DNA of 63,532 nucleotides, the filler included, from Octopus bimaculoides (taxonomy: Eukaryota): the NCBI RefSeq assembly GCF_001194135.2. It is 5 parts of 4 records of this genome, joined end to end, with 100 filler letters (N's around TTAATTAATTAA, not from the genome) between each part and the next. Parts side by side here need not be neighbours in the genome. Positions count along the whole stretch, not along the records: positions 58,043 to 63,532 come from NC_068985.1; 4 more parts are not named here. One strand, 5' to 3'. The position numbers and the translations under genes are program-made. Of the stretch, positions 11,352 through 63,532 are shown one piece after another; positions within the stretch are counted from its first letter, which is position 1; each line of letters starts with the position of its first letter. Under the pieces are notes generated by a model. It made no database searches, was not told the DNA's origin, and saw nothing but the letters and a program-made list of their open reading frames with translations.

Positions 11352-11609
11352 CAGGGCTGGCCAACCTGAGGTCCGTAGTCCGCATGCGGCCCGCAGACTT
11401 TTATCTTGCGGCCCGTTTGATACTGTCTTGAAATGGGGGTTATATAAAAACGATAATATTTCATGTTGAATCAACGATCATTCATTCATTATTGTAATAA
11501 CAGCATGAGAAAGCAAAAATGCTTTCAATTCTGTCAGTATACAAACGTCCCTCAAAAGACTTTCTGTAATTAAAGTGGCCCTCAGTCTAATTCGAATTGG
11601 CCAGGCTTG
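11352..11609. mobile_element. hAT (Charlie-like) MITE, 258 bp
   Basis: TIRs CAGGGCTGGCCAA / TTGGCCAGGCTTG; 8-bp TSD GTCCTGAG (11344-11351) vs GTCTTGAG (11610-11617); subterminal CGGCCCG repeats. Confidence 0.85.
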
Positions 11610-57942: not shown

Positions 57943-58140
57943 NNNNNNNNNNNNNNNNNNNNNNNNNNNNNNNNNNNNNNNNNNNNTTAATTAATTAANN
58001 NNNNNNNNNNNNNNNNNNNNNNNNNNNNNNNNNNNNNNNNNNCCTCTCTCACTCTCTCTTTTTCATATGCATACATTCGAACACCTATTCTTATATATAT
58101 ATATATATATATATATTGACAGATAGACAGACATAGATAG

Positions 58141-58179
<39 letters not shown>

Positions 58180-58335
58180 TAGCATCCACTCTAGCTCTGA
58201 CATGCACGTGCATACAAACAGATTTAAATGCATAAATACAAACAGATATAAATACATACATGCATGCATACATACATACATACATGCATACATACATACA
58301 TACATACATACATACATACATACATACATACATAC

Positions 58336-58870
58336 TAGAATACTGGTGGAATGTAGCAGTGAAGACCTCGATAAAATGTAAGCATAACAGACCTGATATA
58401 ATGATTTTGGATAGAGAAGAGATACTGTGTACAGTTGTGGAAATTAGGTGCCCAGCGGATGTTAACATAAAGCTGAAGATCATTGAAAAAGTGAACACCT
58501 ATGCTAAACTGTTAAAAAATCTGCAGCTACTCTATCCAGATTACAAATTCAGGTTTATACCTGTAATTATTGGGGACCTGAGATTTGTAACACACTGCCT
58601 AAATACCAATCTTGAGAAATTAGGCTTCTCAAAACCAGGAAAGAGAAAAGTAATTTGAAGACTACAGATCCAATCCATCACTGGAACTATAAAAATCTGT
58701 AAAACTTTCCAGAAGTTTATCATTTAAATATTTTATATATTGGCATGTCTAGATATGCAACGATATGCATACATACATGAAGCAAATAGAGAATACATAC
58801 ATAAAGCAAAACATACAAATATGCACATACATACACACATACATACATACATACATACATACATACATAN
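58336..58870 (+). mobile_element. 5'-truncated copy of the R4-clade family, beginning directly after (CATA)n
   Basis: EYWWNVAVKTSIKCKHNRPDIMILDREE.LCTVVEIRCPADVNI...RFIPVIIG...GTIKICKTFQK, collinear with 1-1273; one internal stop. Confidence 0.92.
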
Positions 58871-59311
58871 NNNNNNNNNNNNNNNNNNNNNNNNNNNNNN
58901 NNNNNNNNNNNNNNNNNNNNNNNNNNNNNNNNNNNNNNNNNNNNNNNNNNNNNNNNNNNNNNNNNNNNNNNNNNNNNNNNNNNNNNNNNNNNNNNNNNNN
59001 NNNNNNNNNNNNNNNNNNNNNNNNNNNNNNNNNNNNNNNNNNNNNNNNNNNNNNNNNNNNNNNNNNNNNNNNNNNNNNNNNNNNNNNNNNNNNNNNNNNN
59101 NNNNNNNNNNNNNNNNNNNNNNNNNNNNNNNNNNNNNNNNNNNNNNNNNNNNNNNNNNNNNNNNNNNNNNNNNNNNNNNNNNNNNNNNNNNNNNNNNNNN
59201 NNNNNNNNNNNNNNNNNNNNNNNNNNNNNNNNNNNNNNNNNNNNNNNNNNNNNNNNNNNNNNNNNNNNNNNNNNNNNNNNNNNNNNNNNNNNNNNNNNNN
59301 NNNNNNNNNNN

Positions 59312-59616
59312 NCGTGCAAGTGGCTGAGCACTCCACAGACACGTGTACCCTTAACGTAGTTCTCGGGGAGATTCAGCGTGGCACAGTGTGACAAGGCTGA
59401 CCCTTTGAATTACAGGCACAACAGAAACAGGAAGTAAGAATAAGAGAAAGTTGTGGTGAAAGAGTACAGCAGGGTTCGCCACTATCCCCTGCCGGAGCCT
59501 CGTGGAGCTTTAGGTGTTTTCGCTCAATAAACACTCACAACGCCCGATCTGGGAATCGAAACCACGATCCTATGACCGCGAGTCCGCTGCCCTAACCACT
59601 GGGCCATTGTGCCTCC
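59312..59616 (-). mobile_element. SINE family A copy (3' end lost in gap)
   Basis: Reverse complement of 5147-5450. Confidence 0.92.
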
Positions 59617-59899
59617 ATACCTGCTATCATATATCCATGAAAAACCCATAAAAGACACCTACAGAGTACGTTGTAGTGGAATAATTCTTCATAAATATCC
59701 GAGTAGATAGCGAGACCAGAATTTAATATAGTTAATGTCAACGGCAGAATTAGACTTTAAAATACCATCGAACGGTGTAAGGTAAATAATAAATTCACAG
59801 TAGTTCAATTTCATTTTAAGAGAAGATTGAGAAAAATGTACTGGGATTGTACGCAGCAAAATTTGGGAAAATCTGATAACTTTAAAACTTCGTCATATT

Positions 59900-62080
59900 G
59901 CAATGGGGAAAAACTTCGTTTTTGGAGGAAAAATATATTATAACTAACCAGCGTTTACTAATTTGCTTCTAAACCACAAACTGTATACAAGACGGTAAAG
60001 AAAGTATTTCCTTAAAAGAAAGCTCCTTCTCTGGTATATCTTTAATGATATAGGCTAAAATCTGGAAGGAAAATAACGATTTTAATCCAAATATTGCATG
60101 GCCAGATACTATCAAAAATTAATTCTGTACTTCATCGACAGAAAAACTTAATCCGCTTTGGAATTTTCACTGAAGCTGTATGAAAGCTACATAACAGAAA
60201 TTTACCAGGAAGAGACCTGGTAGTTGAACACTAGTATTAGGTGTTAATGGTCACCAGAAAGTTATCAATATGTATATTTCAAAGTAATAAAGAAGGTCAG
60301 CTTGACATACTAAATTGGCTTGATATAGTACAAACAAATCTTGTAGCCAAGAACGACATAGCAAAAAATTATAGCCTCGTTGTTCGCTTGAAATTATATA
60401 CAGATTTTACGTAAGCTGTCTCAACCAATTATTCCAAGACTAGAACTGCAAGTTCTAGAAGATTAGCGACCGACGAGCCGGCAGGTTGGAAGGAGTCAAT
60501 GTGACGTCTTCCAAACAACTTTTGATACAGCTGTACTGTCTATAATAAGAAAACAATATGGACACCTTGTAACAGCATGACTTGATAACAGGAAGACATT
60601 TGATTCCATTCTTCAAGCATAAGTGCTCAAGTCACTGCAATTGGCAAAAGTTCCTGCTGTCTTAGTTACGATTATTTAAAGATTCCCAAATACTTGGTTA
60701 ACAATCCGCACAAGGATACTTGAAAACCAAAGTATTGTCTCTATTGTTATATTTCAACGGAAATATTCCAGGAAGCACTCTGTGCTTCTCTTTATTTTCA
60801 TATTAAATCCATTAGTATTTTTATTTCAAAATTCAGTAATTCTATGCTTGGGTCCACAAGAGACACTAATGTAACGAACTAAAGAGCCATTTTAGAAGTA
60901 CTTACAATTATAATTTTCAATCATGAGAAACAGCTGTATTTACTAACAATATTTTCAGCTGATATAGGGATAGAATTTCCCATCCATGCTCATATTTGAT
61001 AGCTGAACTTTTCCAAACCCTAAATCTTTCGCATCAATGATCTCCCTATATCTCCTGTTCCACAAAACGAGTGCTACAGAAACTTTGCTATTGGGGAAAA
61101 TATACCAACAAATGGGCTTTAAATAAAGACAAAGTGACCTAGAATGGTATTCCAAAATAAAAAAAATATGGTAACCAAAGCTTTCTTCTTACAACAAGGG
61201 AATATCCAAAAATGCATTTACAGCACCTGTACTGGAAACAACATTTCAGATTCCTGACTGGTTTTTTGAAGAAATATGCTCCATAGATATTACAATCCAC
61301 AAGATAATTGCATTAAGTGCAAGCTTCGACACACAGTGGAAGTAACAAGTTCTGTCTCAAAAGAAAAAAATGAAGAGAAGATGATTCAAGTCAATGTAAA
61401 TAGCTATTGAGTATTAAATATGTCAGACATCATCTACTAAACAACGGCAGCAAGAATAAATATATCAACAAAGTAGTCAAAAGTGAAATAAATAGCATCG
61501 GCCTGTGGGTCAGCAATGAGTTCCTCATGAAGTAATCCTTTTACACTTACCTCCCATGCGATCTTAAAACCGCTGGACTGGTGAACCCCAACAAAGACTT
61601 GGAAATGAAGCGCTCTCCCTACCACAAAAAATTGTGCATGTCTTGAGGATGAGGCGAACAATAACAGGAACTATCTCTCTTGAGCACGTGACCGTTGCAT
61701 CACATTGTACTTTGACCATTATGTTTCTTCAGTCCAAGAATCAGTTACAAAAATATCGAAGTAACGGAGACTATGGTGGTTTTGAATTCCCAAGATGCTA
61801 CAAAAATTCTCGATTATGTCACATTTCTGTGGAAGATATTACACACGTGATCAGCTGCTTCCCAGAAATATCATAAAGGTACAATCTTATAATATAGCTT
61901 AAAAAATACAATTCTACCCGTAAGAATAAATACCTTGGGGAAAATACAGAAAATATTTCTATTTTTGAACAAAAAGTTACATTTCTTCACAAAGAGTATT
62001 GGTGAAACATCCTCATCGAAAATTTTGGTAAAGCTTTGTTAACAGACCTGATATAGTTGTAAGGGACACAAAAGTAAATC
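59900..62080 (+). mobile_element. Old, heavily decayed long R4-clade copy (RT through endonuclease)
   Basis: In order: KIWKENNDFN..AW (~60058), KLHN..LPGRD, A*LDNRKTFDSI (60575-60612), FS.DIGIEF, KIW..LSSYNK...NAF..PVL, RLCHISVEDITHVISC (~61811-61858), NRPDIVVRD (62041-62067). Confidence 0.7.
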
Positions 62081-62384
62081 TGTTGTGTCGACGCCCCCAG
62101 GCGAAGAAGTAGGATCTTCCAAGACATATAAATAGAGGTAGTCTGGCCGTGGTAGGAGTGTTGAGTAGCAGTCGAGTAGCAGTTGTGTAGCTGTTGAGTA
62201 GAGATCATCCGAAGGTGCTAGATAGCAGTAGCTTGAGACATAACAAAATCTATCTGCAGTTATCAGCTACCCTACAGATGTAAACCTTTTTTTTTTTTTG
62301 AATATCAGTGAGAATACTTACACGTAGCTTCTTCGAAACTTGCTGCATCGCGACTCAAAATACAAATTCACATTGGCACCTATA

Positions 62385-62615
62385 ATTATTGGTTTCAAAT
62401 TTTGGCACAAGGCCCGCAATTTCGGGGGACGGGTTAAGTCGATTACATCGACACCAATACTCAACTGGTATTCATTTTATCTCCAGTGAAAGGATGAAAA
62501 GCAAAGTCGACCTCGGCGGAATCTGAACTTAGAACGTAAAAATGGACGAAATACCGTTAAGCATTTTGCCCTGAGTGCTAACGATTCTGTTAGATCGCAG
62601 ACTCATCGGCACTTA
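62385..62615 (-). mobile_element. SINE family C copy
   Basis: AAAGTCGACCTCGGCGG...CTAACGATTCTG is the reverse complement of the family C body. Confidence 0.85.
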
Positions 62616-63111
62616 TAGTTATTGTTTCATTTGGTCATGGTAGTAAATATAAAAAGGGGCAATCACAACTAAAAAAAAAAGACCAAATGGATTTTCAGAC
62701 AAAGAAAGCCCCCAGCTAACGCACACTTTACAAATACAGTAAGTGGAGTAATAAAAATATTCAAAACTTCGCTAAGTTCAACTTATAACTCTGCACCATT
62801 GTTGTTATCTAAATTCCAGCAACGAAGCTTTGTATCTTTATCAAAGACCAGTTCCTTCTTTGTAGAAAGAATCTAAATAATCGCAATAAGATAGATACTT
62901 GGAACATATACACAGAAAATGGTAAACATATTTTTTCCAACATACATAAGCATACGAATGCTCTCTCTCTCTCTCTCATTATCTCACTCTCTCTCTCTCT
63001 CCTTCTCTCTCCCATTTCTCTCTCTCTCTCTCTCTCTCTCTCACTACCTATCTATCTCTAGTTCTCTCTGTCACCCTCTAATTATTTCCAACTTTCTCTT
63101 TCTCTCTCCCT

Positions 63112-63153
<42 letters not shown>

Positions 63154-63265
63154 ATTGTGCATCTCACTCTCTTTTCTAAACTCTGCTGATTCTAGAATTA
63201 CTGTTCTCTGCTCTGTCAAAAACACCATACAATAAATACACACAAACAGACACATTCAAACATAC

Positions 63266-63358
63266 ATAATGGATGTAATTCGTCATCTTCAGTTGACGTG
63301 TTCAAATTCCGTCTTGGTTGAAAGAGTGGAGACGACAGAAGCATCCAGTTGATGATAC
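63266..63358 (-). other. Candidate internal exon (93 nt, symmetric phase 1), unidentified
   Basis: tcttctacacag acceptor and T|gtatgt donor on the minus strand; a single open frame IINWMLLSSPLFQPRRNLNTSTEDDELHPL. No homology recognised. Confidence 0.25.
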
Positions 63359-63483
63359 CTGTGTAGAAGATACTAATTAATCAGGTGAGACATTGACATC
63401 TCTATTATCTTCTTCAAGTCAAGTAAAGGTCACATCCCATATTCAAATTCGCGTGTTTCAGTATGTGTGTGAATATGTATAAG

Positions 63484-63532
<49 letters not shown>

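Follow-up and report, generated by a model that had tools for sequence, protein, structure and literature searches.

Retrotransposons that lack long terminal repeats (non-LTR) and encode a restriction-like endonuclease (RLE) fall into clades that are mostly target-specific (PMC4640811). Among them, Dong targets (TAA)n, snail elements included, and this preference has been described as the rule in molluscs (PMC3812793; PMC7998251). (TG)n is the target of Togen, which lies near NeSL, and microsatellites also serve as targets for some HERO families (PMC4640811), the microsatellite-specific families being credited in that paper to Kapitonov & Jurka 2014. Proteins of the R4/Dong group have an N-terminal Myb-like domain that is free of zinc fingers (PMC7998251), and both Dong and R4 bear a 5' ribozyme resembling that of hepatitis delta virus (HDV) (PMC3774820). 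Waldo, a member of the R1 clade with an apurinic/apyrimidinic endonuclease (APE), targets (ACAY)n (PMC3812793). A full-length Dong is present in the repeat library of Octopus bimaculoides (PMC9115989), and the target of octopus Dong-R4 elements is not stated in any searchable paper. This report concerns a truncated RLE-type element, termed copy A, that lies at positions 58336-58824 of a 63,532-nucleotide stretch of O. bimaculoides DNA (assembly GCF_001194135.2; five parts of four records joined with filler), hereafter the window. The sequence analysed is the octopod piece at 58043-63532 of the window, from record NC_068985.1. Combining the layout of this locus with the flanks of related copies from other octopods and from environmental contigs, the analysis argues that copy A very probably belongs to a family for which (CATA)n microsatellites are the specific integration target.

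A truncated copy between two CATA arrays

Copy A, recognized by translation and by tblastn, is a dead, 5'-truncated RLE-type non-LTR retrotransposon copy on the plus strand (58336-58824), and it sits exactly between CATA arrays of the same strand. Adjoining its 5' side is a plus-strand (CATA)n microsatellite at 58231-58335, read as the upstream half of the target array, for which Tandem Repeats Finder (TRF) gave a period of 4, 26.2 copies, a score of 154 and 88% matches, and which is pure from 58287. On its 3' side, a plus-strand (ACAT)n array at 58825-58869 (TRF: 11.2 copies, 95% matches) represents the element's tail, the downstream half of the target, or both, and leads into an assembly gap of 443 N at 58870-59312 that presumably marks an assembly break within a long repeat. 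When the piece was scanned for (CATA)4 with at most one mismatch, all 23 matches were on the plus strand and within these two arrays (58231-58335 and 58825-58869), and the number expected by chance was 0 (100 shuffles). The initial annotation had described an RLE-type copy beginning immediately after a (CATA)n tract, and the TRF arrays, together with an open reading frame (ORF) remnant that starts at 58336, agree with that description.

What remains of the element is just the last ~130 codons and the 3' untranslated region (UTR), the 5' truncation having removed the CCHC motif, the RH motif and the entire reverse transcriptase (RT). Translated in one frame from 58336, copy A reads LEYWWNVAVKTSIKCKHNRPDIM...VEIRCPADVN...K..EK, and a fuller reading between the arrays is LEYWWNVAVKTSIKCKHNRPDIMILD...VEIRCPADVN...KIIEKVNTY...IPVIIG.... 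By translation and by motif match to the R2 RLE, the endonuclease coding remnant, with its RPD, E and K..EK...Y motifs, spans 58338-58727 on the plus strand. Aligned by tblastn, copy A covers aa 1032-1159 in the ORF of its closest full-length relative, L014, with 53% identity; its protein identity is 70% to P0001 and 85% to P0005, and its nucleotide identity to the Octopus vulgaris copy L001 is 86.7%. Just one close protein match is named, P0004, a hypothetical protein of O. vulgaris, and a Pfam search with the 107-aa copy A fragment gave no match. An in-frame TGA stands at 58656-58658, beyond which the frame runs on to the conserved family end, ...LQIQSITGTIKICKTFQKFII, and to a TAA stop at 58725-58727. 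Judged from its coding sequence, copy A keeps only the nuclease core and cannot be functional.

The in-frame TGA is common to copy A and L001 (10326-10328 in the latter), 22 codons before the conserved family stop, and L024, a third octopus-type copy, has CGT at this codon. The TGA is probably a CGA>TGA change at a CpG and reflects either a common defective source copy or parallel CpG decay. When copy A is aligned with L001 and L024 at their 3' ends, its 3' UTR proves short (58728-58824, plus strand, ~100 bp) and includes runs that resemble CATA; the element could in fact end as early as ~58762 (...gatatg|catacatacat). The remaining stretch, 58763-58824, includes 'agcaaatagagaATACATACATA', which resembles the family-terminal '...atatgaga' plus array of L001, and it may be a second, extremely truncated insertion inside the tail array.

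Junctions of independent copies

All additional copies were retrieved by protein homology rather than by flanking sequence. L001, which is truncated deeper than copy A, starts right after (CCAT)n(CATA)3 and ends in (ACAT)4. L024, a degraded octopus-type copy on a Logan contig, is truncated further upstream, and its contig is bounded by (ACAT)5 and (CATA)5. The full-length L014, on a Joint Genome Institute (JGI) metagenome contig, lies between (CATA)19 at the contig start and (ATAC)8(ACAT)9 at the contig end. The long-read contig L021 holds three insertions in the same orientation, separated by CATA arrays of 49 and 57 units, with 5' junctions at aa 872 and aa 294 that each fall directly past an array. 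In P0028, an unrelated fragment from the profile search, the peptide just upstream of the truncated homology is itself translated (CATA)n. Independent copies, some of them truncated, have the same repeat on both sides in one orientation, as seen for copy A, L001, L024, L014 and the three insertions of L021. Across the small set of junctions available, including those of sister lineages with other repeats described below, 11 of the 12 observable 5' junctions adjoin, on the sense strand, the repeat that is proper to the lineage; the one that does not is in L013, an element with an undefined 5' boundary. Elsewhere than at element junctions, CATA arrays are few and short, numbering only about three in 46 kb of octopod DNA (the piece together with L001 and the Argonauta hians sequence L008), so that base-precise adjacency by chance is very unlikely. 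Searched as an exact pattern in JGI metagenome contigs, an octopus-specific 26-mer gave nothing, and a scan of IMG/VR found no relatives.

Based on these junctions, the sequence at 58336-58824 is very probably a 5'-truncated copy, dead on arrival, from a non-LTR family whose integration is specific to (CATA)n microsatellites. Such a sense-strand target had been proposed from the window by the initial annotation, and the independent copies and relatives, with their 5' junctions, support it.

Protein architecture

An exhaustive profile search recovered 2616 relatives. In the long ones, the part that is homologous to copy A has a Pfam RVT_1 domain and a zf-RVT/CCHC motif on its upstream side; RVT_1 is present in the full-length relatives P0008, P0018, P0042, P0051 and P0128, and Pfam found no Exo_endo_phos domain among the full-length relatives scanned. 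In L014, a single intact ORF of 1161 aa contains YVDD at aa 639, the CCHC motif CRLCKIKPEDVSHVIAGC at aa 961, RHD at aa 990 and RPD at aa 1049, with no C2H2 zinc finger anywhere along its length. The family RT matches that of R2 with a phmmer E-value of 1e-21; it is the only part detectable by sequence, the RLE and the N-terminus having no detectable similarity to R2, and searches of PDB sequences with N-terminal and C-terminal profiles gave noise only. The intact C-terminal domain was modelled with AlphaFold2 (AF2) from P0001 and 37 relatives, with a predicted local distance difference test score (pLDDT) of 83 and a predicted template-modelling score (pTM) of 0.80. This model matches the R2 RLE in 9dou, 9nl2, 9nl3, 8gh6 and 8iby (Foldseek E 1e-6 to 3e-4, TM 0.60-0.70), and the endonuclease motifs of the family align with the RH, PD, D/E and K..KY motifs that have been defined experimentally in R2Bm (PMC4838377). 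Taking the RT, the CCHC motif and a predicted C-terminal RLE of the PD-(D/E)xK type together, the family is classed as an RLE-type non-LTR retrotransposon; the initial annotation had made the same assignment, which the RT, the CCHC motif and the R2-like fold now substantiate.

At the other end of the protein, full-length relatives have in common the motif RPNRxY..W..EL..D...GY.KRLK.LWD..HP. For this N-terminal domain, AF2 predicts three helices (pLDDT 74), and Foldseek returned only weak SANT/Myb matches, none of them significant (2m2e at TM 0.53/0.60; 1wgx and 3osf at E>6); Pfam on the N-terminal regions gave noise only. Helix 3 reads L-N-E-x-A-K-R in CATA lineages vs L-R-D-Q-A-S/T-R in CTTA lineages, a difference that is confounded with phylogeny.

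Rfam, applied at E<=1 to five loci that include a 5' end, detected no ribozyme family, a negative to be read in light of the fact that sequence models often miss HDV-like ribozymes and that no descriptor search for pseudoknots was made, and minimum free energy folds of the first ~110 nt of the 5' ends gave no shared or unusually stable structure. Full-length elements do have a short GC-rich hairpin in the initial ~50 nt beyond the 5' repeat, and a T-rich ...TAG/TAAGG motif comes after the hairpin; these features lie at 93-135 in L016, 60-95 in L019 and 88-112 in L014, where a common fold or ribozyme was not demonstrable. Internal tandem repeats also occur in 3' UTRs, with units of ~17-18 bp in the second copy of L021 (1690-2010) and of ~58-60 bp in L014 (4100-4400) and L002 (6251-6419).

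Clade membership

Membership of the family in the R4 clade, to which the initial annotation had assigned it, is plausible, and a Dong-like lineage is the most likely. The indirect support for it comes from the microsatellite targeting, which resembles that of Dong, from the predicted three-helix N-terminal domain and from the Dong-R4 name under which octopus RLE elements are catalogued. It is not identical with Dong proper, since no junction has (TAA)n and the targets are instead (CATA)n, (CTTA)n or (CTGA)n. The targeting would stand even if the family fell in the HERO clade or in an unnamed RLE clade rather than in R4/Dong, a placement that is rather unlikely but has some points in its favour. 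Some HERO families are microsatellite-specific, at least as Kapitonov & Jurka 2014 are cited in PMC4640811; Dong-R4 and Hero families coexist in O. vulgaris (PMC13282606); and the 5' HDV-like ribozyme of Dong and R4 (PMC3774820) was not detected here. That absence is nevertheless weak evidence, because Rfam models rarely detect HDV-like ribozymes. Dong-R4 is, moreover, far commoner than Hero in O. vulgaris, with 5 families and 1129 recent insertions vs 13 (PMC13282606), and it is a full-length 'Dong' that the O. bimaculoides library contains. The predicted three-helix N-terminal domain, free of zinc fingers, likewise fits what has been described for R4/Dong and speaks against HERO.

Sister lineages with other four-base repeats

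Relatives outside the CATA group adjoin different tetranucleotides. (CTTA)n occurs on both sides of L016 and of L002, a Tara contig; it adjoins the 5' side of L015 and L019 and the 3' side of L017 and L018, and in L022 and L023, by comparison with L002, a 3' UTR of ~1 kb is followed by a short degenerate (CTTA) run. (ACTG/CTGA)n surrounds L009-L012 and lies 3' of L013. L009, L010 and L011 (8883-9560) are the same insertion locus in three samples, with an upstream array of about 25, 29 and 165 units and the composition (TGAC)n(TCAC)n(ACTC)n; at this locus, the target arrays are hypervariable in length.

A neighbour-joining tree was built from 669 columns, spanning the RT to the C-terminus, and is internal to the family's own relatives. 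The tetranucleotide-flanked elements form one clade in this tree, with 100% bootstrap, and the CTTA users form a subclade within it, with 83%. CATA users stand at two places, L014 with P0154, P0155 and P0008 (100%) and L021 elsewhere, which means that either CATA is ancestral or targets have switched more than once. Placed on its 130 residues alone, copy A is loosely associated with P0001 and P0002, and also with the Argonauta copy and the L014 group. A tentative reading, which we hold to be possible though somewhat short of an even chance, is that these elements represent an undescribed, Dong-like RLE radiation in cephalopods and other marine animals that has switched repeatedly among (CATA)n, (CTTA)n and (CTGA)n, with specificity perhaps residing in helix 3 of the N-terminal Myb-like domain and in the repeat tail of the RNA, and with elements that may seed or lengthen their own target arrays.

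Alternatives to target specificity

Two further explanations would dispense with targeting altogether. Under the first, the family has no sequence specificity, its 3' (ACAT)n tail is self-made as in many CR1, L2 and RTE elements, and the 5' arrays are there by chance or are the tails of upstream copies. The 3' array is indeed inseparable from an element-encoded tail, the L021 copies do sit in the tails of upstream copies, and octopus RTE elements carry 3' microsatellites (PMC9115989). However, the independent 5' junctions, at 11 of 12, combine differing truncation points with the same repeat and strand; the 5' (CATA)n array of copy A has no element upstream of it; and in the full-length L014 and L016 the repeat is immediately 5' of the 5' UTR. 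Insertion into the tail of a predecessor would, besides, still be (CATA)n targeting. Variable truncation points joined to the repeat, along with repeats that are specific to each lineage, argue against this explanation, which is very unlikely, and against the next. Passive co-accumulation of elements and microsatellites in repeat-rich, low-recombination regions, which would suit a piece with several microsatellite types and SINE-like (short interspersed element-like) repeats and which was put forward to explain Waldo-A and Waldo-B close to CA repeats of Drosophila (work cited in PMC3812793), has next to no likelihood here, given that the junctions are base-exact and strand-consistent, that the flanking repeat is the one proper to the lineage (CATA, CTTA or CTGA) rather than merely a nearby one, and that the other microsatellites of the piece lie away from element ends.

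Several points do weigh against specific integration into (CATA)n by a Dong-like family. Only three octopus-type copies have readable junctions, a sample below genome-wide scale, and both the degraded second copy in the piece, copy B, and the Argonauta copy L008 are too degraded for junction scoring. L013 has (CTGA)62 at its 3' end and no repeat at its undefined 5' side, and L025 shows just a degenerate CA-rich 3' region. Short-read contigs often end in microsatellites, and a contig bounded by repeats therefore speaks for adjacency and not for array length. The evidence for clade membership is indirect, and the mechanism set out below, from the nick site to the tail pairing and the part played by the N-terminal domain, is inferred.

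Proposed mechanism

The observed basis for a mechanism consists of the domain set, the repeat in one orientation on both flanks and the variable 5' truncation. By analogy with R2 and Dong, the protein would recognize the repeat and its RLE would nick the (TATG)n strand. The (ACAU)n tail at the 3' end of the RNA could then pair with the nicked repeat, and the RNA would be copied by target-primed reverse transcription. Early stops in reverse transcription would leave truncated copies joined to the upstream (CATA)n at variable points, of which copy A would be an example.

The initial annotation had gone further and supposed an endonuclease with altered specificity, and this is not established. 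The predicted RLE fold is an ordinary one, and target choice could equally well lie with the conserved N-terminal domain. A new endonuclease specificity is not needed, since the R2 RLE is described as a non-specific nuclease joined to DNA-binding domains that are distinct from it (PMC4838377), and the choice of site by R2 is reportedly directed by an N-terminal Myb domain (PMC7998251).

Other features of the piece

Copy B, which comes from a related RLE family and is older and heavily decayed, occupies 60169-62790 on the plus strand, the same orientation as copy A, and was located by tblastn with P0155, P0158, P0001 and the L014 ORF. It extends from the RT to the C-terminus, is nearer to P0001 and L006 than to copy A (the match to L006 by eye) and is broken at about 62395-62600 by a SINE-like insertion. 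Its 3' side ends near 62950 in 'acatacataagcatac', after which a long (CT)n array runs from 62961 to 63150. TRF and the sequence show the piece as a whole to be rich in repeats: besides SINE-like ones, it has arrays of (TA)n, (ATAG)n, (AG)n, (CT)n and (TG)n. One SINE-like repeat, with a head that looks tRNA-like by eye, lies on the minus strand at 59313-59610, directly past the assembly gap; ARAGORN called no tRNA in it.

Sub-threshold matches to the Rfam mir-297 model (34-60 bits vs a gathering score of 90) occur on the minus strand of the (CATA)n arrays in the window as well as in L014 and L021, those in the window being at 58261-58333 and 58812-58868. These matches are an artefact of the repeat and do not mark a microRNA gene. 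In Argonauta hians, a SINE-like repeat starting (CAT)n CCATTTAACGTCCGCTTTCCATGC is inserted at the 5' edge of L008 (7998-8160) and recurs 3 kb downstream, at 11450-11500. A (CAT)10 array that precedes the Argonauta copy on its upstream side was rejected as a target on the ground that it is part of an inserted SINE-like repeat.

Significance

What is new here is an RLE element with (CATA)n as its target; that RLE elements can target microsatellites is already known from Dong, Togen and some HERO families. The initial annotation suggested that the (CATA)n target had not been described, and the searchable literature likewise holds no RLE element that has it, Repbase and Dfam lying beyond that search; should Repbase already list the target, only a point of genome annotation would remain. 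For target-primed reverse transcription, the best-understood models are site-specific RLE retrotransposons, R2 among them, and these are in development as gene-insertion tools. Close relatives that are each aimed at a different four-base repeat offer a comparison for what encodes target choice, the candidates being the N-terminal domain, the endonuclease and the pairing of the RNA tail. If true, a target-switching radiation would be a natural series for learning how RLE retrotransposons get re-aimed. The cephalopod 'Dong-R4' class would, if the targeting holds, be non-randomly placed, confined to (CATA)n arrays and possibly feeding them, with a bearing on microsatellite abundance, on assembly gaps such as that at 58870-59312 and on marker design. 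That the family contributes to the abundance of CATA arrays, as the initial annotation proposed, is plausible.

Comparison with known systems

R2, which is specific for 28S rDNA and has been resolved by cryo-electron microscopy (8gh6, 9dou, 9nl2), resembles the octopus family in its RT (E 1e-21), in its RLE fold and in motifs of the RH, PD, D/E and K..KY type, and target-primed reverse transcription is presumed for the family as well; the octopus family differs in being without N-terminal zinc fingers and in having a microsatellite, rather than rDNA, as its target. Waldo is alike in its specific insertion into an ACAT/ACAC-type tetranucleotide microsatellite (PMC3812793), but it belongs to another clade, occurs in insects and has an unrelated N-terminal endonuclease of the apurinic/apyrimidinic type. 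The target common to Waldo and the octopus family is convergent. Togen and the microsatellite-specific HERO families are, like the octopus family, RLE-type elements with microsatellite targets, and they differ from it in the repeats used. Dong (R4 clade; Bombyx mori, Anopheles, Biomphalaria, Darwinula) differs in its target, which is (TAA)n vs (CATA)n here and (CTTA)n or (CTGA)n in the sister lineages, and in its 5' HDV-like ribozyme, which the weak test applied here did not detect. Dong and the octopus family are alike in having a single ORF that combines an RT and a CCHC motif with an RLE at the C-terminus, and in inserting in one orientation into a simple microsatellite, with the 3' end of the element running into the same repeat.
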